Below are positions 1 through 33,100 of a stretch of 59,951 nt of DNA, in pieces (the first letter of the stretch is position 1; every line of letters begins with the position of its first letter). The stretch comes from Hydrolagus affinis (taxonomy: Eukaryota), in the NCBI GenBank assembly GCA_012026655.1, contig JAAILG010001921.1, positions 1 through 59,951 of the forward strand. Reading direction: 5' to 3'. The position numbers were made by a program, and so were the translations under genes. The notes below the pieces were generated by a model. It worked only from the letters and a program-made list of their open reading frames with translations, did not search any database and was not told the origin of the DNA.

Positions 1-399
1 TCTCTCCCTTGCCCCACCCTCTCTCTTGCCTCCCTCTCTCCCTTGCAACCCTTCCACCTTTGTCTTCCTCTCTCCCCTTTCCTCTTTTCTCCCTTTCTGG
101 CCCTATTTTCACGACTGTTTGTGGGGGACGCTGCTGTGCGCAATTTGGCTGCCGCGTTTTCACCCACAAATCTACAGTTAAATTATTAAATATTAAATGT
201 AATTTTTTTTGTGGTTGCTGTTGTATCAAATGCAAGGATTATTATTATTATTGTAACCCAAGTAAAGATTAATTTTAATTCAGATTTGAACAAAAAAAAT
301 CTATTTTTACCCAGGACGCCAGTTGTCAGACAATAATACACCTTATTAAACAATAACAACAACAAAAATTACACTATATATTTATATACTGTAATGAAT

Positions 400-718
400 T
401 TGATATCAACTCTCATTGGGTCTGGCCTCCCTCCCTCCCTCGAATCCTCCACTCCACCATCGGAGGCCGTGCCTTCAGCCACTACCCCCCACCCCCCCCC
501 ACCGAGGCTCTGGAACTCCTTTCCTCACTCCGTTCGCCTCGCTTCCTCCCTTTCCTCTCACTTTCTACTTTCAGGTCTCGACTGAAGACCTTTCTTTTCG
601 ACCGCGCTTTCGGTCACCTTCTTTGCCCTCCCGCTGGCTCGGCCCCGGGATCCGTTATTGGGAAGCGCTCTGAGACCCGTCTGGGCTGGAGGGCGCAATA
701 TAAATCCTTGTTGTTGAT
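400..718 (+). mobile_element. L2 (CR1/L2 clade) LINE 3' fragment
   Basis: Degenerate ORF2 C-terminus (STIGGRAFS..LWNS..FRSRLKT) plus a 3' tail ending (TTG)n. Confidence 0.8.
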
Positions 719-1679
719 ATTAGCAACTTAAAGAGCTTTTACTGTAAAGCATAATCATTGGCTATTGATAAGTAATAATACTAATAATCCTTGCAGTTGA
801 TGTAGCACTTTTCAAGTCTTCTAGACGTCTCAAAGCGTTTCACAGAATACACTGTAAAGTGAATTGACTGTATCTTTTGTGGGCGAAACGCGGCAGCCAA
901 TTGCGCACGGCAGTCTCCCACAAACAGTCGTGGATTGAGTGACCAAATTATTATTTTTTTTCTTGAGGGATTATTATCTATTTTTTAGTAAGAACGCACT
1001 ATATTCTTTGTCAGCTTTAACGTGCACATTAACTTAGTTCTCAAAAGGCTTTGTGTGTTTCCTCTACTAGATGTGGGCAGCCAATTTTGCACGCAGCACA
1101 AACAGCCCTGAAGTGAATGACCAATATGATTTGGGAGATTGATGGCCAGGACACTGGGGAAAACTTACATCCGCTTTTTGATTTGTGCCACAGAGGCAGG
1201 CAGGGCAGGGCAGGCAAGACCCTCGGTCATTCTCCAAAAAATAGCATTGAAAGCTGCAATATTGCGTTCACCCACAGAAATACAGTCAATCCACTGTATC
1301 ATATAATAACAATCCTTGCATTTGTTGTAGCCCCTCATCATGTCTTCAAGACGTCTCAAAGAGCTTCACCGAATATACTGTGAGGCGCTTTGAGACTCCC
1401 CAACGACGTGATAAGTCGCAATGTCTGTGCGCAATTGGCTGCTGCGTTTCATCCATAAATATACAGGCAATTTGCTTTACAGTATATTCTGTGAAACGCT
1501 TTGAGACGTCTGGAAGATGTGAACAACGCTATATCAAAATGCAATGATTATTATTATATTAAATGCAAGGATTCTTATTATTAATACACTGGATGTTTGG
1601 TGTTCAATATGCTGAGCGAGCCAGTCAATGTGGTCTGACTCAGGCCTTGTTCAAGACTCCTCATCTCCTCCATGTTTAG

Positions 1680-1859
1680 GTTCTGCACATGCTCAGCATG
1701 GACAGCAGAGGAAGTTGGACTGCACCTTTATGGAAGATGGTCCCCAAGTCGGAACCATGTTTGCCCCAGAAATCATCCGGAGGAAGGCCATCCTGGTCTT
1801 TGGCGATATGGGGGCAGAGGACTCACAGCAAGAAAAAGCCATCACCTTCAATGTTAAAG
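1680..1859 (+). CDS. TAPBPL: Tapasin-like exon: start of N-terminal domain (..KLDCTFMEDGPQVGTMFAPEIIRRKAILVFG..ITFNVK)
   Basis: Acceptor catgtttag, donor AAAG|gtacgt, phase 1-1, 180 nt. Confidence 0.88.
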
Positions 1860-4800
1860 GTACGTACGGCGTAGGGATTAAATTCACGCTCCGCTAACGT
1901 GTTCTATCAGTATGTCCCGAGGACCTCTGATGCACTGTATTTAACCCTATGTAGTGTTTCTCCTCAAATACAGTCACTACATTTAATAGTAAGGGTTTTG
2001 AGATACTTTGATGACATGAAGAGATGCTTATATTGAATTTGAGAGTTAATAAAGCTCCAAGCTATGCCAATATTAATAATAATCAGTTGATATAGCGCTT
2101 TATCACGTCATTGAGAAGTCTCAAAGCGCTTGCTTCACACGATATCTTGTAAAGTGGGTTGACTGTATTTTGTGGGCGAAACACGGTAGCCAATTGCGCC
2201 CAGGGTCGTCCCACAAACAGTTGCGGGTTGAGTAACCAATTTTTTGGGAGGCATTATTACCCCCTGTAAAGCGAACTGCTTTCCAGGTACAACAATCTTT
2301 GGCTGCTTTTGGTTGCAGATATTTGCTCCTTGCTTTCCGTGCCTTGCAAATCCGCGTTGTCTTCTGTCGATCCAACAAGCAGGTGGATTTTTGCCTCGTG
2401 TTTTTGCAGAGCTCTCGCTGGACATGTTCCAATACGTGGGAGGAGAAGGCAGCCAGTTGGAGTGTGAAGTCAAACGGTATTCTACTCACGGCATTCACGT
2501 GCCTTGGCCTGAGCAGGGTAAGGAGCTCGATGAGGATTTATTCAACCGCTGGTTCGTGGTGACCATCAAACACACCGACGACAAGTTCATCACCAGCAGC
2601 TTCTTGAGGAAGGTGCCAGAGACAGAGAGCCAGGAGGCAGCTGAGCATGGAACGAAAGAGGAAAATGAGGATTCGCCAATTGGTGACATGGACATTCTGC
2701 TGGTTAAAGGTAATGTTCGTAAGCAGCTAAGGAGCCCACCAAAGGGATGTGTGACTTGCGTGTGGGTGTGGGGTGTATTTGGGGGCTTGACATGATAATA
2801 ATAATCCATGTGTTGGATATAGTGCCTCATCACACCATTGAAACATTTCACAAGCCCTTCACAGAAAATACTGCTAAGTGGGTTCACTGGGTATTTTGTG
2901 GTTGAACCTCAGGAGCACATCAGTATCACACAAACAGCCGTGGATTGAGAGACCAAATCATTACTATTTAAAAAAAAATTTTTAATGCAAATTATTACCC
3001 CTGGTAAAAGCCATCCGCCAATCCACTAACAACCTGGTTCCCACTTACTGCTGAGTAAACAGACTTTTGGAGTAAGGAAACTTGCATAAGGTTTCCCCAC
3101 TGGTGGGGGAATCGAACTCAGGTCCTCTCGCTCGCGAGGCGAGTATTCCAACTATGACTCTACGAGATGCCAATGCATGACGATGAGTATAAGGAAATAC
3201 TTTGTATATGGAGCTCCTGTGGCTCAGTGGTTAGAGCACTTGTCTTGCAAGCTGAGGAGACCCAAGCTGGGGAGACCTGTGTTCGAATCCAGGCAGGTCA
3301 GGGCGAAACCTTGGGCAAGTTTCCTTACTCCACACCCCTAATAATAATTCCTCCAAAAAAACGCCACAATAATAACATTGGTCATTTCAGTCCACGACTG
3401 TTTTGTGGGACACTGCTGTGCGCAATTGGCTGCCACGATTCGTCCACAAATAAATACAGTCAATTCACTTTACAGTATATTCTGTGAAGCGCTTTGGGAT
3501 GTTGATAAGATGTGAAAAGCGCTATATCAAATGCAAGGATTATTATTATTATGATATCTTTTACTTGCGTGATAAGGCGCTGTATTGAATGCAGTGAGTA
3601 TTATTATTATTATTATTATCATTACAATATTATTATATCCGGGCTGCACGATGAAGCAGAGAGAAAGTTTCCAATCCCAATGACTTTGGACGCTGTCCAT
3701 TGGTCTTTTTTGCACCCCCCCCAGTGGTCTACATAGTCCGCACAAGCACCCCGTTGATCCGAGCCAAACTTAAGCAAGACGTGATGCTGGACTGCGGCTA
3801 CAAGATCGACCACAGTGCCGACGTCAACATCGAATGGCGGCACCAGCACAAGAGAGCGAGGACCAAGCTGTTCTCCTACAATGGGCGACACCGCCAGGTC
3901 GAGCACCTGGAGCCGGGGGTCACAGCCTTCGAGGAGCAGATCAAGAATGGGAACGCTTCCATTCGCATCCAGAACGTGGCCATCAAAGACGAGGGCACCT
4001 ACATCTGCTCGGTCTACGTCCCCCCGCTCTTTGGCACGAACACTGTCCTCTTGGAGATTGTGGGTAAGGTCACCTGGGAACTTAAGACTCGGCTCTTGCC
4101 CACCTACAATGTCAATAGCTTGAGTTTAGCGTAGCGCTTTTCACGTCAGGAGGATGTCCCGAGGCATTGGGCAGTCAGGGTTCTGCACCCGAGTTGGTGG
4201 TTAGGATCAGGAGGGGTGGAGACCTTTGAGGGTTGGGATAGGAAGATGACCAAAGGCACGGTCGAAGAGGAGCACCTTGAGACAGACCGTAAGGGAGGCA
4301 AGGGAGGGAGTGAGGTGTAGGGACTGTGGGATGAAAGGCCCACGCTTCATTCGTGGGGCAGGCAAGGTTGGGGGACGAGAAGCAAGCCCTCTAGCATTAG
4401 GTAAGCAAGATGCGTCCCTCCAAGAAGAGAGTGTGCATTCCAATTCAACAACCTATGAAACCACTAAAACAAACAATTATAATTTGGTCACTTCAATCCA
4501 CGATTGTTTGTGGGACGCTGCTGTGCACAATTGACTGCTGTGTTTTGCTCACAAATATACAGTCAATTCACTTTACTGTGACGCACTTTGACGCATCTAG
4601 AAGACTTGGACAATTGGAGGAGGTGCAGTTTGCTTTGACCGAGCGCTAATCTGTGATATTTTGTGATTTCTGTGATTTTTTTGTCGGCTAAACGTTTTGG
4701 GATGCCTGGCGAGGAGGTTAAGGGGGAGAAGAGAGGTGACAGTGCGTGTGAACAAAGAGGAATGATTGATGTATATATATTTACATATTTATAAGGAAGG

Positions 4801-7468
4801 CACTATATCAAATTCAAAGAATTATTATTATTATAGGTGCAATTTTCATACAGAAAGGGAGAGGCGAGACAGAATGATAAAGTGAAGGGGTTTCCAGAGA
4901 TTAGGAGCGTAGCCGGAGGGAAGGAGGAGGCGAGCAGAGCAATGGGGTATGAGGAGTTCGAAGACACGCAGTATTAGTGGCCAAGGTGAAAACACGTAGC
5001 AAGGGACCCAATCGATGGTGTGGTTTTAAAGTAAACCTTGCGCTTGTTCCTCAATAAAACCTTCGAAAACAAAATGAAACGGTTCTCAACGGTTTCCCTG
5101 GCAGAATCGCCCATCGTGCAGATGAACACTGAGCCTCTCCAGCTGACGGACGGCGAGGAGCGGAAGCTGACGTGCGAGATGGCACGTTACTACCCTCTGG
5201 ATGTGTCGGTCAGGTGGCTGCGGCATTGGGAGGGGCAACACACACTGCCCGATTACCTGGAGAACATGGTCTTCTCGCCCCACCGGAGGAACGCGGATGG
5301 CACCTTCAACCTGACCAGCTTCCTGAGGTTCCGGGCGTCGCTCAAGGACAACGGAGCCCTGTACACGTGTCGAGTCGACCACCTCAGCCTCAGGAAAACC
5401 ATCAACCGATCGGTCCCCGTCATCGTGAAGCGTAAGCGCACAGCACAGGCGGGGTGGGGTGGGGTGGGGTGGGGTCGGTGGGGTGGGGTGGGTGGGGTGG
5501 GGTGAACTGGGAGTGGGGTCATGGGGGCTCGGGTTGTTTGCGAGTAATTAGAATTATATAATAAACAGCTCCCAGATCAGGAAGCGGAGGGAATGGGTGG
5601 GAGGGGGCGGGGGGAGGGAGGGAGGGAGAGTTAATGTAATTTTTGTAGGTTGTTCGAAACTCAAATCTCAAACACTTCACTTTGCGACCATGGAGCGAGC
5701 GCACTTTAGAGTGAATTCTGTCACGCACTGTGACGCGTGAAAAGCAAGGATTATTGTTGATATATTCTTGTGGCGTACCTCTCATTTTAAAAGCATGCAG
5801 TTGTGAAAAATTACCCTATTTTTCATTTGGAAAATATTTGTCTTTGTTTGCTGTTGTTTGAAAATTTGCCTCAAAATGTTACAGCTCGACCTCCGGGCAT
5901 AGCAGCTTTCCTCATTTGGTTCGGCATCATCGCCCTCATCGTTGTCTTCGTCACTGTCCTCATCGTTCTGATTTGCTCCTTGAGCAAAGGTGAGTATCTG
6001 CACATAGAAAAGATTGGAGCCAGATTGGGTTCTGATGGAATGAACCGGGAGAAATTATCTCCACTGGTAGGTGGTTCAGAAGCCAGAGATTTAAGCGATT
6101 TGCCAAAAAGAGGAAAGGGCGATTTCAGAAGAACAGTTTGTTTTTAAACACAAAGGACAGTTAGGTTGTGGAATGCTCTGCCTAAAACTGTGGTCACGGA
6201 GAATCACTGGTAGCTTTAAAGAGGGGAGTAGATAAGCGTCAACACAAGAGAAGTATGAAAGGCTGTGGGAGAGGCATGAGAATTGGACTGAACAGATAGA
6301 TCTTACCGTGAATCAAGGCTGGAGCAAATAATTGTTCTGCGCTATAAATTTCTGTGGGTTTAAGTTGATAAGTAGCCTCAAACCGGACTCGCCATTTTGT
6401 GGGCCTCTTTCGAAGGCTCGACAACATTCACAGCATTTTTCCACCATTTACTCCAAGGCGTGCTTTGTTACACACCGAGAACTGGAGGAAATGGGCAATT
6501 TCCGCAAAAATGTACGAACTTGCAGACTCAACCAACATTTTATTTCGATGTAAAACTCCCACCGTGAAAATCCTCGTCACAAAACTCCAATGACATATAC
6601 GTTGCCGCACATGACTTTGAGAGAGTGTTTATCGCTAAGGATCACGGCTGGCTAAGACTACTTCAAGTCCGCTGCTCCGTGAATGAAAAGATGTACCAGT
6701 GATAGGAAGAGTGCGATTCCCATGACCCTCTTCTTGCCGGCAGGATGCAATTGTGCCGATGTGAACTTTTTGACCATTCTCTTTATCTTTTTCCTTCACA
6801 GACAGGGAAAGAAACAAGGTAAAAGCCAACGCCTTTTTGTTTTTCTTACTCGATTCGTGAAACCTATGTTGGTTAGTAAGGGCTAACGCTAACGCAGAGA
6901 ATTCATTGGTGAAATCCCAAAGGTCCCCTCATAGTGTCTTCCCCCAATCATTCTAGTGGTGAAATGTAGTCTTGGCTGTGTGAGCGCCACATTGTCGGAG
7001 GTGCTGTGTTATGGATGAGATGATAAAACCGAGGTCCAATTCTGTGCCTGTTTAAGTGAAAATTAAAGATCCTGTGGGCTCTGTCAGAAAAGAAATGGGC
7101 TAAGAACTCCCCCCACCCCCCCCACCCCCATCCCACTGATAAAATAGGTCATTGACTTCATGGCCGTGTTGTGGGACATTGCTGTGTGCAAATTAGCTGG
7201 TGTGTTTGCATACAAATCCGCAGTTAATATCCTGCGCAGTATATCCTGTGAAGCGCTTTCCGATATCATCGTGAATACTTTCAGGATTTTTATCGCTAGG
7301 ATTATTGTGTTATTTATTTAAGCTTTCCCACAAAATGATCACTTTATCCACTCAATGTTAATTAAGTGCAGAGGGCGGAGAGACGTTCCGATGCGATTTC
7401 TCTCTTAACAGAAACTCAACACAATGCTCTCTTTTTCTTTCTCTTTTCAACAGAAGAAGCCGTACTAA
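1680..7468 (+). CDS. TAPBPL: Tapasin-family (tapasin-related / TAPBP-like) type I membrane protein, 5'-partial. Exons 1680-1859, 2410-2709, 3725-4063, 5105-5431, 5885-5989, 6802-6818, 7454-7468
   Basis: All GT-AG joins keep one frame (1283 nt plus 1 nt from the missing exon = 427 aa + stop). Tapasin-family motifs: LDCTFMED, LECEVKRY, IgV DCG..EWRHQH..DEGTYIC, IgC1 LTCEMARYYP..YTCRVDH, TM, KKxx tail. Family is secure; orthology (TAPBPR vs a third lineage) is not. Confidence 0.9.
2410..2709 (+). CDS. TAPBPL: Tapasin-like exon: rest of N-terminal domain (ELSLDMFQY..LECEVKRY..WFVVTIKH..DILLVK)
   Basis: Acceptor gtttttgcag, donor AAAG|gtaatg, phase 1-1, 300 nt. Confidence 0.9.
2795..3170 (-). mobile_element. 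tRNA-derived SINE, long subfamily
   Basis: Reverse-complement tRNA head, extra tacctagcagtaagtaggaacc-type segment, Deu-like body, (ATT)n tail. Confidence 0.75.
3210..3552 (+). mobile_element. Full-length tRNA-derived SINE, short subfamily
   Basis: A box TGGCTCAGTGG (3220), B box GTTCGAATCC (3281), body shared with dozens of copies in the window, (TTA)n tail. Confidence 0.9.
3725..4063 (+). CDS. TAPBPL: Tapasin-like exon: IgV domain
   Basis: Acceptor ccccag, donor GTGG|gtaagg; V-set signature DCG..IEW..ASIRIQNVAIKDEGTYIC. Confidence 0.93.
4100..4400 (-). mobile_element. L2 LINE 3' fragment
   Basis: Reverse complement of the SLASLTVCLK..LFDRAF ORF2 end and the shared L2 tail. Confidence 0.7.
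5105..5431 (+). CDS. TAPBPL: Tapasin-like exon: IgC1 domain
   Basis: Acceptor ccctggcag, donor AAGC|gtaagc; C1-set signature LTCEMARYYP..VRW..NADGTF..YTCRVDH. Confidence 0.93.
5885..5989 (+). CDS. TAPBPL: Tapasin-like exon: transmembrane segment (PRPPGIAAFLIWFGIIALIVVFVTVLIVLICSLSK)
   Basis: Acceptor tgttacag, donor AAAG|gtgagt; about 25 consecutive hydrophobic residues. Confidence 0.88.
6010..6352 (+). mobile_element. CR1 LINE 3' fragment
   Basis: CR1-type ORF2 end remnant (ggttgtggaatgctctgcct..tttaaagaggggagtagataag) and 3' UTR. Confidence 0.7.
6802..6818 (+). CDS. TAPBPL: 17-nt cytoplasmic micro-exon (DRERNK)
   Basis: Pyrimidine-rich acceptor ttttccttcacag, donor AAG|gtaaaa; converts phase 1 to phase 0 as needed to read KKPY* in the next exon. 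Confidence 0.7.
7454..7468 (+). CDS. TAPBPL: Last coding exon (KKPY*)
   Basis: Long polypyrimidine tract ending ttttcaacag, then AAG AAG CCG TAC TAA. Confidence 0.72.
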   Translation, partial: KKPY

Positions 7469-7539
7469 AGCATTGGGCAAGACTCGGGGTGAGTGTCTGG
7501 AAGAGCTCTGTGCAATGAGTGCGGTTTCACTTTATACTT

Positions 7540-7790
7540 TATACATCCTGTAGTCCCTCTGCCTCGCCCCCCTCCCTGGCCTCTTTCAAGTCTCGCCTCA
7601 AGACTCTCCTCTTCAATGGACACATCAGCAACTCCTTATCCCCCCCTCCTTCCCTCCTCCTCCCCCGTCCGTCTGTCCGTCCATTAGTCCTCAGCTCAGG
7701 TCTGAAGCAGTAACTGTCCAGCGCTTTGGGACATCTTCCTGACGGGAAAGGCGCTAGACAAATGTAATTTTGTTGTTGTGGTTGTTGTTA
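7540..7790 (+). mobile_element. L2 LINE 3' fragment
   Basis: [15 protein letters not shown] remnant; tail gcgctttgggacatcttcctgacgggaaaggcgctagacaaatgtaattttgttgttg. Confidence 0.75.
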
Positions 7791-9148
7791 TACCGATTGT
7801 GAAACTCTGATGAATACTGAGCCCAGATCAGCCAGAACAGATCACAGGTCTAATGTGAGACAGTACAGATTGGAGGCAAGAGGGAGGTGACCCTATGTGC
7901 AGTTGAAGGGAGTAGGTTTAAGCGCTCCTGGCCGCTGCACCACATGAAGATTGCTGCATAAATGCAAATTGTTGTTGTTTTAAGGCTGTGTTTGAAAGAC
8001 AGACAGAGATTGAGGCTCCAGATAACACGTCCACGGCAGTTGAGTATTTCCGCAACACTATGTTAAATCGGCTAACTCATATTGTGTCAGCTGGTTTCAA
8101 ACAAGTTTGCCCACAAAATACCGCGGGGTATACTGTACAGAGTGTCCTCTGATGCGAAAGGCGCCACGTTAACTGTAAGATTTACTATCATTGTTATTGG
8201 AAGTGAATGGAACAAACATTGGCTCGAGGCTACTGAGATCAGAATGACTGATACTCTTCCCCCTCTTTGTCTTCCCATCAGGTGTGGCTGAGCTGAGATA
8301 GTAGGAACGCTATTTGCTGCTTTGTGATTTCTTTCTCCCCCCATTCCCCAATCGAAGGATGTTAATTCCTAACGAAACTTGAGCCACAAGAGCGAAGGCT
8401 GCCAGCTACGTTAACGGAGTCGGATTGGTGACCGGGTTTACATTGATACCAGAGACTGAGAATGCTGCGACATTAACTGCACAGAACTCCTTAAAAAAGT
8501 AGGTCTCTGGACTCGGACACAAAGCGCCTGCGAGGTCACAGAATTTCTTCTTGTTGCGATGGGTGTATAGTTTTGGCCACAAAATACACAGTCACTTCAT
8601 ATTCGCGGTATATTCTGTGAAGCACTTTGAGATGCCTCGACAACATGAAAAGGCACAATCTCAAATGCGAGGATTATTATTATTATTATATCCAGATATA
8701 ATGGATATAATGGGGGAGGGGTGGGGTTGGAAAGAACAAGTGTGAAAGCACATCACTACAAGAGCAGCTCCATTAGCACATTATATATTTTCACTATTTC
8801 TCTTCACAGCCAGGTGTTTAGAAAATATTCATGTCTTTCTCCGCACCACTGCCCATCCCAACCCCACTCCCAATCCACTCACCAAATCCTGATAACTTGC
8901 AGTCTTCCAGAGCTCTTTTTAAGCAGGTTGATGGGTTTCCGCGTGCGTCAGAAACCCGGCTGAGCACAAATGAAACGTCATTAAGTTTATTAAGTTTGTG
9001 TGCCAAGGATGAGGGCAAGAGAGTTTGCCAACATCAGGGACATTTCTTTTTATCTCTGATGGAAAGTTAAGTATCAATTAAAAAAAACATATATTTCCTC
9101 CCTCTGTTTTTATTGTAAGTGAATTGTTCAAAATGTATTAATTTATAA

Positions 9149-27100: not shown

Positions 27101-30100
27101 AAGAGTAAGAAATTGCCTGAAGATCCCAAATAGATTCCTGAAGAGAGGGAATATTAAAAAGGATGTTGGGATTAGGATCGTGATAAGACAGGCTCAGGTA
27201 TAGAATGAAACCATTGCTGTTTCAATGGGTCGAATGGCCTGTTTCGGTGCTGTAAGATTTCTACGAGATAAATAATGACGTGGGGGCAGGGGATTTGATT
27301 TGAGGAGGGGCTCAATCATGAAACGTATTGCATTTTAGTAAGAAGTGCTCCATGGCAGGACAAATGTAGAGAACCTGCTTACCTTCTTGAAGATGGGTGG
27401 GCTTGGCAACATCGGTCCAAACAAGTGAACTCCGTCTCGAGCAGTGACTGAAATCTGATCAGGCAATCGGAACATGGGGGATGGGGTGGCGGGGGTAGGG
27501 GAAGCAAATAAAAAGTTATTTTGAATTACAAATACTGTATAGTGTACATTTAACGCATGTTACTGTTGAGTTAAACTGGGTTGAGTTGCGTTGGACTGAG
27601 TTGGATTAAGTTGTGCTGAGTTAAAAGTTCTTCTAGACGTCTCAAAGCACTTTACAGAAGATAATATATTCACTGTAAATATATTTGTGGGCGAAATGCG
27701 GCAGCCAATTGCACACAGCGGCGTCCCACAAACAGTGGTGGATTGAAGTGACCAATTTTATTAATTTATATAAATGCAAGTAGCTGTTTGGCTGGTCAAT
27801 GACCAAGGCTTGAGGCTGAAAAGCTTCCAAATGATTACCTTATAGATGGTTGAATCAGTGCCCGGATTCTCCACCTGAACCACAACGTAGGCGTGAAGAA
27901 AGTTCGAGGCGATCATGTCCGGCACGAAGGGCGTGTTTTCCTCCTGGAACACGATGGCTACAATGTCGTTCCCAATGTGACGTTTTCTCTGGAGCTGTGA
28001 CGGGCAAACCAAGCGCTTTAAATCAAAGTGAACAGTTTTGACGGGGTTAAAACTGGGGATGAGTCGAGTGTTGTGTCGGATTAAACTCATGTAAGGTTTA
28101 ATAGGGTTCAGCACCTGCTGCTGAAAAGCTTCCAAGATCCCCTTCCCCACTTCATCTTTTTCACGGATCCTCTACCGTACTCAGTTGTATGATTCTATCA
28201 TCCAGTAAATCTTCCTCCAAGTGATTTAGGTGCAAGATAAGATGGTGGGCATTAGCAGGCAAATCGACCACAAGAATATCACTGCCAATATCAACCCTGC
28301 CTACATCCAAGCACAAGCTCTATCCAGCAGAGGTCACTGGATAGCTTTGTGGAGCAGGAACCCAGATGGAGTTAGGTTTACGCTTTGCTAAACCTCAAGA
28401 AGCTCTTTGTCAACAGTGATGTCTTCACAACAACAATAACAAATACTTAGAGTAGTTGCCCTTCACATCGGAAAGACATCCCAAGTCGCTGGACAGTTTG
28501 GACACAAATTGGGAGGTGTGGTCAGGAGGGGTGGGCGTCCTGTGGTGGGGGGGAGGTGAAAGGGAGAGAGTAACCTCCCACGGACAAACACATGAACCTT
28601 CTGGATCAATATGTCTCAGTTTCATATCGCACAGTGCTTAACAATCGAGTGCCGAGAGGGTTTAGTGCGGGAGAAAGAGAAAAATTTGGATTATAATAAA
28701 CCTCTCTCTTTCCCTCCTTAGAAAGAAACATTCTCTCCTAGACTAGTCAAGGGACATGTTCATCTATTTATTCAGTTCATCAGTGGAGCGTTTCCAATTC
28801 TGGGCACTCTTCTTTGAAGACCGACTTTAATCGCACTAAAAGAGTCCCATTACAATTCTGAGAGAAATTTTTTTTTAGTGAAGCTGCAGTTAATGGTCAT
28901 GGTTTAATCAACAACAGGGGCCAGGCAGCTTCTGATGGCAGAGGGTAAGAGCGAGTTCCTGACTCCAGCATTAATAATCTCCAGCAGTTGCTGAATTATT
29001 CACCACGGCCATTAATCTACATGGTTCAAGGTGAGATCGTTTCAAAGGGATGGGAGATGAGCATTCTGGTTCTGTTATTTAAGAGCTGCACATTATCCTG
29101 TTGTTTTTTGGCGTGACAGACAGGAATTGGCAAATCCATCCTCGGATTTGTGTTAATGTTAAATCATTTTTATTTGTTCCGCTCTTTGAAGGAAGAGTTT
29201 AAGACCTTGTTCTTCAATCCATACCTTTGGCAAATAGCTAATGAGCTACGGTTGGACAAATAAACTCTAACTGGCTTTCCCCCACCCTCTGTCTCGTTGC
29301 CGTGCAATCACCCTAGAATGAATATGTCCCGTCAAGGGAAAATAAAAAAAAATATTGGACCCATTTATTGACCACAAAATTGCCAACGTGTATTGCCAAG
29401 GTTGATAAACAGACAGTCATAAAACTACATCTCCTGCTATTACTAAGTCGGAAATATCTCATTGCTAAATTTACTCATAGGCAAAAAATAGCCTCTTGCC
29501 ATATCTAATCTGAAACATAATACTGTAGACAGATGCTAAGGAGTCATTCCAATCTGTACAATAATCTCAGGGCTCAGCGGATTGCCATGAAGTGTTTGAG
29601 TTTCATTAAACTAAATGATATCAACCACTCCCCATAGTTGTTTTTACATGGAATATGTTTGGTTCCTGCTGCCCACCTCCTGCACAAAGGACCTGTAGGT
29701 GACGGACAATGTCATATGAAAGTGCACAGAGCAAATACCTGTTGGGTGTCTCCCTCTGTAAACGGAAGCTTTGTGGAGACGTGGAACATTATCTCCCTGT
29801 GCTTGAACGTGGTGTAAACAGACTCGATCCCAGTTTGACCATGTGCCACATCGAGGCCACCTCGGAAACTGCGTCAGGGAGACATTGAACCATCATTGCA
29901 AACTATCAAAGTGCTTCACAGAATATATTGTAAAGTGGGTAGACTGTGTAGTTAGTGGGTGAAACGCAGCAGCCAATTACACACAGCAGTGCCCCACGAA
30001 CGGTCATGGATTGAGTGACCAATTTTTTTGGGGGAGAGGGGATTATTACTCCTGGAAGGCAATTCGCCAATCGACCAACAGCTTGGTTCCTACTGAATGA

Positions 30101-33100
30101 GCCTGACACTCAGAGGTACCTTATTTCAGATGAGGGACAAACCTGAGATCTATCCATTCAGGTGGTTGAGATCCGAAGGTCCCATTTCCTGGCCAACAAT
30201 TCTCCAGATCAATGAATCCACCTCCCCAAACTTCTCCCCATCACCCATATTATTCTTTCTGAAACACGACCTTTGCAATGTGGGACGGTATTTTCACTCA
30301 CCCTTTGAAATCTTGGAGTACGATTGTGTCTCCAAGCAGCTGTAGGAATTCCTTAAAGGCAGGACTTTCCTCATCGTTCCCGAACAATTCCCCTTCCGTG
30401 GTCTGAAAAGTAGGAACAAAGCCCTTTAGTGTTAAAACATTAAATACTGAAATGTAACATAATGTAATGGACCAAGATAACGTGACTTGAGCCAAGCTTT
30501 TAGGTGGAAACGACATCTGAGAGAAGGTCTCGTCACATTGGCAGATATCCTGTTGTGTAGTGGTTAAGAGCACTCGCTTTGCAAGCAAGAGAACCTGCGT
30601 TCGATTCCTGTGCAGGGTGAAACCGTAAGCGAGTTTCCTTACTCCACAGGCCTCCGTTTACCTAGCAGTAAGTAGGAATCCAGTTGTTAGTCGAATGACA
30701 GATAGCTTTCCAGGGGGTAATAATCCCTCCAAGATAAAGACGAAATTCATCACTCAATCCACGGCTGTTCGTGGGAACACTGCTGTGAGCAATCAGCTGC
30801 CACGTTTTTTCCGTACAGAAAAAAATGATCACTTTACAATATATTCTAGGAGGCGACTTGAGAGATCTCCATGATGTGGTATTGCGGTATATCAAATGCA
30901 ATTATTATTATTATGGATTATTCATAGGGGCTGGACTGGATAATGATGGGCAATTTTAACTGAAATTAACACTTGGATGGGTAATATCGTCAGAAACAGC
31001 CGGTATCTCCCTTATCTGCATGTGTGACAGACTACAGCCACCTTACTGAGTGATGAGATTGTTATCTCAGCCCTTCTGATTGCTCGATCACTGAGCTGGC
31101 GTTATCAACGCAGATCACAGCCCAAATAGTCTCAAGTTATCACCTGAAAGTACATAATAAAGTGAAGTTTTTTTGTTGCTGAAAATAAACAGTACAATCT
31201 TATTATTTTTCTCTCCCTTTTGTTAAGGGCGCCCATTACACTCACCTGACTGAATCGTTGATAAATCACACCAAACTTGAAGTCGTTATTGATCTCGTGT
31301 TCGTCGTATGTGACAATCAGCTGGGACGCCTTGTGTATTAAAAAGAATAAAGCGATCAACAGATTGCAAGGTGACGACAGTGACCTTCCAAAGTCTTTCC
31401 TTCCACCCCAAAAAAAAGTTTCCGTCGACTTTAAGGAAAATTGTTTGGAAAGTTCATTATTTATCTCCCACACCCAATCTTAAGAAAGTAAACAACCTGA
31501 CTTTCACTGGAAAGCAGCTGAGATGAAGATAAAAACATTTGCAACCGCTGTGCTCAGGGGGGACTGAACGCCGTTGTGGGTTAACAGTGAGAGAGCCCCA
31601 TTGAGTGGCAGTCAGGCTCAATTTTACCCAGACGCAGAAGGTTGGAGGTTTAACCTCCACATTGGGACTTTGATCTCTTCTAGTCTAGGTTGACACTTCA
31701 ATGTCGGGATGGGGGTGCAATACTTTTGGAGGTGCAGCCCTTCCATTGAGATGTGAAACTGAGGTCCCTGTTCAGATTGGCTGCAAAGATACACCTTTAC
31801 AGCAAATTCTAGGAGGCATTTTTGATACTTGCTCCTGATGAGAAAGGAGCCATTACAAATGGAAGGAATTATTATTATGAGTACTGTATCGCAATCAAAA
31901 TTGAATCACAGTATTGTCTAGTCTGAGCCAATGTATTGCTAGGACCTCAGCCTTGTATATGGGCTAGAAAGCATGTAGTGTTAAGTATGTTGAACAATAT
32001 CCTGGAACCACATGTAACTGTTATCAACACACTTCTGCCGAAGGTCACTGTGGAGGGGGCATTGCCTTGCTGAGCACTTACCTTGGGGTAAAGAACAGGA
32101 GAAAACTTCACACTGGACAATTCATCACAGAGGAGCTAAAGGTGGGTGGGGGGGGATAAAGGGGAAAAGGAACAGAAAGCATTCTTTAGAGCAAGCAACA
32201 ACTCTGCCGTCCAACGCCTTGGGACATCCTACCGATGTGAAAGGTGCTCTACAAATGTAATCTTGTTGTTGTCTACACTCTTCTGAGACTGAGTTATAAT
32301 TTTGGCTTCAGAACAACAGGAGTTGTTCCCCCATATCTTCTCCTTAAAGCCTCATATACATGAAGTCCACACACACACTCTCTCTTTCTTTGACAAGTTG
32401 ACCCATGAAATATTCCATTATCCTGGGTTCCTTCCATCCCAGGCACCATATTTAGCTGACAGCATGAGTCCAGCCGATTGCAGCCAGTCTCTCCACTATT
32501 GCCTTGCAACACTATAGTCTGCCCTCACTGCTGGAGGAATGGGGGCAGTGAGTATAATTTTCAACAACTTAGTGGATGGAGAACTGAACTGCTGGGGTCT
32601 GAGGGGGAGGGGGAAAAAGGCAGGTTTAATGGGATTGAAAGGATTGCTCTTTGAAAAAAGCCGGCGCAGATACAATGGACAAAGTGACCTCCTTCTGTGC
32701 TGTAGATTTCTGTGGTTTCTATGAACTGAATCCTTGTTGGTGTGCTTTAGAGCGGAGCGCTATCAATCCCTGAAACTCATGTTGCTTTAGCTACACCCTC
32801 ATCCACAAAACACAGCAGATAAGGAAACAAACCCCTGACCAGCTGAGAAATCCACAATTTGTCTGTTTAAGTCGATTTGGCAGATATGATGGTGGGGGTG
32901 AGGGGTCGGTCGGTTTACAGAGTTAGGGTTAACAAAGAAGATCCCATCTCACCAGGACCTTCTCAGGGCAGCCTGGGAATGGGCAATAAACATTGGCTCT
33001 GCCAGCATCACCCACATCCGGACACAGCTCAAAGCAAACCACCACTTGTTTGTTTTACAAAATGTTCCTAATTTCTCTCTCCCAAACTTCACTTTACAGC

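Follow-up and report, generated by a model that had tools for sequence, protein, structure and literature searches.

A holocephalan gene of the TAPBPL lineage, the third branch of the tapasin family, and the proposed role of its product as a retained class I chaperone

Which member of the tapasin family is encoded at 1680-7468 on the plus strand of a contig from Hydrolagus affinis (JAAILG010001921.1, positions 1 to 59,951), and what might its product do? An earlier reading of this stretch of 59,951 nucleotides (the window), made from the sequence alone, had proposed a candidate third editor of the peptides bound by major histocompatibility complex (MHC) class I molecules, and had pointed to a third tapasin-like lineage in non-placental jawed vertebrates. 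Such a lineage is real, being that of TAPBPL (PMC5824609), and the gene belongs to it. We consider it likely that the gene is the holocephalan orthologue of TAPBPL, with a product that is proposed to be a class I chaperone or editor retained in the endoplasmic reticulum (ER) and working outside the TAP complex. TAPBPL is meant here in the sense of Grimholt 2018; the human gene symbol TAPBPL instead encodes TAPBPR. The gene is assigned to the lineage because of its C-terminal tail signature, a phylogenetic tree with topology tests, its synteny, and the existence of a third gene of the family in sharks.

TAPBPL is a third ancient paralogue of tapasin and TAPBPR that has been kept in non-placental jawed vertebrates. 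It was described in gar, teleosts, frog, turtle, alligator, birds and marsupials (opossum), with loss in placental mammals, and was dated in 2018 to the bony-vertebrate ancestor in a study in which cartilaginous fish were not sampled (Grimholt 2018, PMC5824609). The same study reported that the membrane span of TAPBPL is without the TAP-binding Lys, that some members have an ER retention signal, and that the lineage has a 'unique cysteine', proposed as a possible contact to ERp57 or UGT1 (PMC5824609). In later literature TAPBPL is established and its function uncharacterised (PMC9586880), and the salmon TAPBPL genes are induced by interferon-gamma together with the class I pathway (PMC7573153). 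What had been put forward as a candidate third editor is instead a cartilaginous-fish member of this known, functionally uncharacterised lineage.

The gene is a multi-exon gene with seven coding segments at 1680-7468, all with canonical AG/GT borders. The product spliced from the window exons has 426 amino acids without its leader and ends in ...DRERNKKKPY. Junctions are in phase 1 except after a 17-nt micro-exon, where the phase is reset to 0. In the list below, L006 is a public 1801-nt spliced RNA-derived contig from a near-identical relative (97-99% at nucleotide level), which encodes protein P0001; UTR is untranslated region and Ig is immunoglobulin.

1680 to 1859, plus strand: exon 2, where the mature protein and its N-terminal domain begin, with Cys14 and then a long loop; phase-1 borders (acceptor AG/G, donor G/GTACGT); L006 154-335 maps to 1678-1859 at 96.7%, and RNA contigs of a relative also lie on 1678-1859.
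2410 to 2709, plus strand: exon 3, the second part of the N-terminal domain, with Cys78, the RYSTHGIHVPWP motif and an acidic linker; L006 334-635 maps to 2408-2709 at 97.4%.
3725 to 4063, plus strand: exon 4, the IgV-like domain, with Cys183-Cys254, the E196-W-R198-H-Q200 patch, Ile253 and an NAS glycosylation site (N236); Pfam V-set at 1.2e-13, PDB sequence match to TAPBPR at 2e-8; L006 634-974 maps at 98.2%.
5105 to 5431, plus strand: exon 5, the IgC1 domain, with Cys296-Cys361, YYPLDV and SPHRR; Pfam C1-set at 1.8e-11, PDB sequence match to TAPBPR at 1.7e-12; L006 974-1301 maps at 98.5%.
5885 to 5989, plus strand: exon 6, the connecting peptide and the uncharged membrane span; L006 1302-1407 maps at 99%.
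6802 to 6818, plus strand: exon 7, the 17-nt micro-exon (D-RERNK), with borders CACAG/ and /GTAAAA; present in L006 between exons 6 and 8 with 2 differences.
7454 to 7488, plus strand: exon 8, encoding KKPY, with the stop at 7466-7468, 20 nt of 3' UTR and then a GTGAGT donor; L006 1422-1461 maps to 7452-7491 at 100%, with the contig reading across the exon 8/9 junction.
8282 to at least 8624, plus strand: exon 9, a 3'-UTR exon with acceptor CATCAG/; L006 1458-1801 maps to 8281-8624 at 99.1% and ends at 8624.

The gene is spliced and transcribed. The blocks of L006 match the exon borders exactly at 96.7-100% identity, micro-exon included. Exons 2-5 are bridged by RNA contigs from a relative that is more distant, and in a close relative stranded RNA reads fall on the exons with the polarity of plus-strand RNA. 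Exon-exon joints were not visible in the raw reads, in which intronic repeats swamp the joint table, so splicing is shown instead by the contig pieces and L006. The micro-exon takes the phase from 1 to 0, with the result that exon 8 reads KKPY-stop; when it is skipped in translation, the tail has no dilysine motif. Exon translation, the Pfam V-set and C1-set matches and the L006 junctions bear out the architecture given by the sequence-only reading, a tapasin-family gene of N-domain, IgV, IgC1, membrane span and a tail ending in KKKPY. Its description of the open reading frame as complete did not hold, because 1680 is the acceptor of exon 2 and the leader exon precedes base 1; the gene also runs past 7468, where that reading had ended it, through exon 8 to 7488 and on to the 3'-UTR exon 9. 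The segment between these exons, 7489-8281, is an intron within the 3' UTR. The stop is 20 nt upstream of the last exon-exon junction, which is too near for an expected trigger of nonsense-mediated decay.

The closest protein to the translated product is that of Callorhinchus milii, named 'tapasin-related protein-like' or 'tapasin-like protein' (79% amino acid identity), and 12 sharks and rays follow at 47-57%. The sequence-only reading had spoken of a shark, which was imprecise, the nearest species being the holocephalan Callorhinchus and the sharks lying at 53-57%. Further best matches were found in coelacanth, lungfish, bichir, sturgeon, teleosts, frogs and condor. Identity to bony-vertebrate TAPBPL was 33-47%, compared to 24-30% for TAPBPR and about 22-24% for tapasin (TAPBP). 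In a maximum-likelihood tree of 40 sequences, the chondrichthyan proteins (support 100/98) joined the TAPBPL of bony vertebrates, as they did in a quick tree, and the branch parting TAPBPL from TAPBPR and TAPBP had support of 100/99. TAPBPR was sampled by a profile search, with mostly mammals, birds and reptiles among the matches listed, and a search with quail TAPBP gave birds only. Approximately unbiased (AU) tests rejected the grouping of the chondrichthyan proteins with TAPBPR (p 0.0032) and with TAPBP (p 0.0026). The phylogenetic check that the sequence-only reading had called for thus placed the gene outside both better-known clades. The other outcome that the same reading had named as telling against it, that its features would be shared by ordinary orthologues, was what we found. 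The dilysine tail and the absence of a Lys from the membrane span are common to fish, frog and bird orthologues and were noted in 2018, and the 'hybrid feature set' is therefore not special to this gene.

The tail itself, KKKPY, fits the signature K(K/R/P)KPY of the lineage. Tails given in the supplement of Grimholt 2018 are KKKKPY for gar TAPBPL, QRKPY for salmon TAPBPL1a and KPKPY for chicken, kiwi and turtle (PMC5824609). A Lys at -3 with another at -4 or -5, followed by PY, was present in 15 of the 17 chondrichthyan sequences, and the dilysine and PY end was also found in coelacanth, lungfish, bichir, sturgeon, most teleosts, a frog and two birds; the exceptions were mostly truncated or alternative models. 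The window gene is like other TAPBPL genes in its clade, its tail, its span without Lys, the RYSTxGI...WP motif in its N-domain and an EXO5/RAP1GAP-like neighbourhood. It differs in coming from a cartilaginous fish and in being without the 'unique cysteine'.

A tail of the KKxx type is also what tapasin has, and some orthologues are named 'tapasin-like' or 'tapasin'. The product further resembles tapasin (3F8U, 7QNG, 9RCV) in its three-domain luminal fold followed by a span, in the disulfide positions of its N-domain and Ig domains, in its dilysine ER-retrieval tail and in its E-W-R-x-Q patch. However, it falls in a separate clade, and it has neither a Lys in the membrane span nor a free Cys like C95 of tapasin. 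The membrane-span Lys of tapasin is its contact with TAP. The AU result, the missing span Lys and the location of the gene also argue against the gene being the classical tapasin gene of this species: shark TAPBP maps to the MHC, which is another locus, and a RAP1GAP-like gene is the only neighbour identified in the 60-kb window, which was not exhaustively screened. That identity is scarcely credible.

The chromosomal context points to the TAPBPL lineage as well. EXO5 lies upstream of the orthologue in white shark, Callorhinchus, sawfish and the frog Pelodytes, and in the present genome would fall beyond the window start. In Callorhinchus, sterlet, condor and the window, a Rap-GAP gene in the opposite orientation is found downstream; in the window it is represented by the following exon.

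27824 to 28003, minus strand: RAP1GAP-like exon, tail to tail with the tapasin-family gene; Pfam Rap_GAP at 6e-18, human RAP1GAP structures at 1.8e-24.

The RAP1GAP-like gene lies at about 27.8-31.5 kb on the minus strand; an open reading frame at 31132-31473 on that strand resembles a Rap- motif by eye and had no Pfam match. A screen of the 60-kb window, which was not exhaustive beyond this neighbour, identified no gene of the MHC pathway. In Supp. Table 1 of Verissimo 2023 the other two family members of sharks and rays map elsewhere: tapbp is in the MHC (white shark Chr19, sawfish Chr34), and tapbpl, which in that study denotes TAPBPR, neighbours cd4/lag3/a2m (white shark Chr40, catshark Chr16). 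In white shark, the orthologue of the window gene adjoins EXO5 on a 171.6-Mb chromosome (Carcharodon carcharias CM029974.1, at 156.7 Mb). This chromosome could be Chr8 of Verissimo 2023, in which case MHCpara-9 genes at 143.9-170.9 Mb would bracket the locus, or Chr19, which carries the MHC; a coordinate search of the Verissimo 2023 supplement for the white-shark locus found nothing. The sawfish orthologue is at about 11,169,347-11,189,005 of Pristis pectinata CM019875.1. The sawfish 'tapbpl' of the same table (MHCpara-12, Chr21: 11,165,020-11,189,259) coincides with this EXO5-linked gene and not with a cd4/lag3-linked TAPBPR. The entry is probably a naming mix-up between TAPBPR (symbol TAPBPL) and the TAPBPL of Grimholt.

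That entry bears on the idea that the gene is the cartilaginous-fish TAPBPR (human symbol TAPBPL), for which the NCBI and UniProt names ('tapasin-related protein') and the PDB sequence searches, in which the Ig exons matched human TAPBPR and not tapasin, also speak. The product is like TAPBPR (5OPI, 5WER) in fold, in these best PDB sequence matches, in the E/R/Q residues of the TN6 site and the Ile of the TN5 site, and in being presumably independent of TAP. It seems very improbable, however, that the gene is TAPBPR: the tree and the AU test separate the two, identity is higher to bony-vertebrate TAPBPL, and white shark and catshark have a separate tapbpl in the cd4/lag3/a2m (12p13-type) region, whereas the window gene belongs to an EXO5/RAP1GAP block. 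The synteny of that block is common to bird and frog TAPBPL, and birds have a separate TAPBPR too. Furthermore, the window protein has Gly in place of C94 of TAPBPR, does not keep Q272, and has a dilysine tail that is missing from human and mouse TAPBPR. Several bat and perissodactyl TAPBPR models (P0117, P0120-P0125, P0112) end in ...SKKKE or ...SKKEE, which are of the KKxx type, and the statement of the sequence-only reading that mammalian TAPBPR has no KKxx may not apply to all species or isoforms.

With the gene placed in the TAPBPL lineage, the question becomes what its product might do, and the fold and the conserved residues provide some insight. The domain order is a luminal N-terminal domain of ~160 residues, an IgV-like (V-set) domain, an IgC1 (C1-set) domain, a single membrane span and a short tail. 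The N-domain exons matched no Pfam family above the cut-off and gave no significant PDB sequence match, and the only sequence relatives of this domain were tapasin-family N-domains (homologue search with exon 3). AlphaFold2 was run on the full-length Callorhinchus orthologue P0034 with the 55-sequence family alignment, and the resulting model had a pLDDT of 89.8 and a pTM of 0.81. In a Foldseek search of the PDB the top 16 matches were all tapasin or TAPBPR (E 7e-20 to 6e-26 over 370-450 columns), among them tapasin entries 9rcv, 3f8u, 7qng, 7qpd, 6eny, 7tuf and 7tue and TAPBPR entries 5opi, 5wer and 7rno; for 9rcv, 3f8u, 7qng, 6eny, 5opi and 5wer the E range was 1e-23 to 6e-26, and two-domain matches to B7-H6 ranked after all 16. 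The predicted Callorhinchus structure is about equally like tapasin and TAPBPR. The match extends over the full length, and the N-domain, which is invisible to sequence searches, is thus a domain of the tapasin type.

The luminal part contains six cysteines (14, 78, 183, 254, 296 and 361), and one further Cys is in the membrane span. The predicted pairs Cys14/78, 183/254 and 296/361 all fall in invariant or near-invariant Cys columns of the family alignment, and no unpaired luminal Cys is expected from these conserved columns; the luminal Cys are only paired ones, as the sequence-only reading had said, the pairing being predicted. Its uncharged membrane segment was likewise confirmed, since the 31-residue hydrophobic span has no charge until its closing Lys (SLSK). 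C94 of TAPBPR is needed for association with UGT1 (PMC5441866), and the window protein has Gly in that column. At the column of the 'unique' Cys of TAPBPL (WFTCT) the window reads WFVVT. This column has V or M in all 16 chondrichthyan sequences with a residue there, the window included, G in coelacanth, S in lungfish and A or Y in frogs, and C in 44 of the 50 sequences from teleosts, bichir, sturgeon and birds. Judged from the alignment, the paired-Cys-only state holds for chondrichthyans, coelacanth, lungfish and frogs and not for ray-finned fish and birds, and the extra N-domain Cys marks a part of the TAPBPL lineage and does not define it.

The class I contact residues are kept in part. E205, R207 and Q209 of the TN6 site of TAPBPR align with E196, R198 and Q200, and Q272 of the same site falls at T264; I261 of the TN5 site aligns with I253, and R335 of the IgC1 domain aligns with R333. 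The TN6 mutant of TAPBPR (E205K, R207E, Q209S, Q272S) abolishes class I binding (PMC9956121).

Taken together, these features suggest the following mechanism. The product would be a type I ER membrane glycoprotein that COPI retrieval, by way of the lineage-wide C-terminal dilysine signal, keeps in the early secretory pathway, retrieval to the ER being what is established for KKxx and KxKxx signals. It would bind the heavy chain and β2-microglobulin of MHC class I, or of class I-like molecules, through the E-W-R-x-Q patch and the Ile of its IgV domain, and the S-x-H-R loop of the IgC1 domain would add a class I contact, as in tapasin and TAPBPR; binding is suggested by the conserved contact patch together with the fold. 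It would then act as a class I chaperone or peptide editor. Because the span is uncharged and there is no unpaired luminal Cys, it would probably work outside the TAP-anchored, ERp57-conjugated loading complex and without a Cys-dependent contact to UGGT1. This independence from TAP, ERp57 and UGGT1 is the weakest step, drawn from the absence of motifs only. The sequence-only reading had proposed it too, and it agrees with the lack of a free luminal Cys, the Gly at the C94 column and the uncharged span.

Not every product of the gene need be retrieved to the ER, as tail-altered isoforms of Callorhinchus indicate. Two isoforms, P0229 and P0227, were recorded in the cluster of P0034; one skips the membrane exon (...KVKRWERNKKKPY) and is predicted to be soluble, and the other reads through the donor of the micro-exon and loses KKPY. 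In the window, the frame is open past the donor of the membrane exon for 53 further codons (5990-6147) and ends without a dilysine motif. Stranded RNA reads of a relative cover the intron after the membrane exon at about exon depth (5950-6349), which suggests some intron retention or an alternative tail.

Several points weigh against a class I chaperone or editor of the TAPBPL lineage that works outside the loading complex. A missing Lys or Cys is no proof of a missing contact to TAP, ERp57 or UGGT1. The structural model is that of the 79%-identical Callorhinchus protein and not of the window's own. Three of the four TN6 residues are kept; the fourth, Q272, aligns with T264 and is not conserved. 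The 'scoop loop' is aligned only approximately and is not conserved across TAPBPL. The recorded Callorhinchus isoforms drop the membrane exon or the KKPY end. The tree contained no chondrichthyan or teleost TAPBP or TAPBPR, its TAPBP being from birds only. Finally, C95 of human tapasin is not conserved in the other sequences aligned by Grimholt, including non-human TAPBPs (PMC5824609).

It is worth weighing whether the gene belongs to the TAPBPL lineage and yet is no loading-complex-independent class I peptide editor. Other contacts might bring the product into a complex that contains TAP, its clients might be non-classical class I-like molecules only, or, in its tail-less isoforms, it might be a surface or secreted ligand of the B7 type. 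Similarity to B7-H6 and CD276 is seen in the IgV and IgC1 exons as well, and human TAPBPR has been reported to act on T cells as a co-inhibitory surface molecule (PMC8103088). The isoforms without the membrane exon or KKPY end and the reads over the open intron would fit such a ligand, and since the link of C95 to ERp57 is not kept beyond mammals according to Grimholt (PMC5824609), motif absence is weak evidence. On the other hand, the conservation of the dilysine tail over about 450 million years speaks for a main product that resides in the ER, the MHC class I contact patch is conserved, and the whole three-domain fold, beyond the Ig pair, matches tapasin and TAPBPR. It thus seems rather unlikely that the product is no such editor, and we continue to prefer an ER-retained class I chaperone or editor outside the TAP complex.

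A broader proposal for the lineage as a whole is possible, although we hold it doubtful. TAPBPL would be an autonomous ER-resident class I chaperone, which in cartilaginous fish, coelacanth, lungfish and frogs would have no covalent oxidoreductase or UGGT1 partner. Ray-finned fish and birds would have gained their Cys later, or else it would have been lost repeatedly elsewhere. The clients of the lineage may be a distinct set of class I or class I-like molecules, and where the lineage was lost, in placental mammals, tapasin and TAPBPR would have compensated.

The 5' end of the gene was considered separately. The first 153 nt of L006, comprising 5' UTR and leader (MIVAIWLSQLWLLCPPG), had no match anywhere in the window, which places the signal-peptide exon upstream of base 1. 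Local alignment of the Callorhinchus leader exon with positions 1-1600, as DNA and as protein, gave scores no better than those of shuffled sequences. One candidate leader within the window, at 1563-1599 (MQGFLLLIHWMF, with the layout ATG-hydrophobic-G/GT), is similar to the Callorhinchus leader and is conserved in intron 1 of Callorhinchus; it was ruled out because it sits in the tail of a repeat with 12 copies in the window and because L006 uses another leader exon. The repeat is abundant and interspersed, with a body at about 3210-3552 and an end ...TATATCAAATGCAAGGATTATTATTATT. The 12 occurrences of its tail (222-249, 1555-1582, 3523-3550, 8657-8684 and 8 more) compare with 0 expected, reads cover it 10^4-10^6 times as deeply as the exons, and ARAGORN found no tRNA in it. 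A G-rich (GGGGT)n-like microsatellite occupies 5440-5510, directly past the donor of the IgC1 exon.

No new kind of molecule is revealed by these results. What is modestly new is the explicit placement of cartilaginous fish in the TAPBPL clade, the near-universal K-x-K/KK-PY end, the EXO5/RAP1GAP block as a marker of orthology, and the lack of the extra Cys in groups other than ray-finned fish and birds. The results also expose a naming trap, in that database names and at least one published table confuse the TAPBPL lineage with TAPBPR. Features found throughout the lineage (dilysine-PY tail, uncharged span, E-W-R-x-Q patch) are told apart from one that is not, the extra Cys, and this allows narrower hypotheses about how TAPBPL works. 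With TAPBPL present in cartilaginous fish, all three members of the family would date to the jawed-vertebrate (gnathostome) ancestor.

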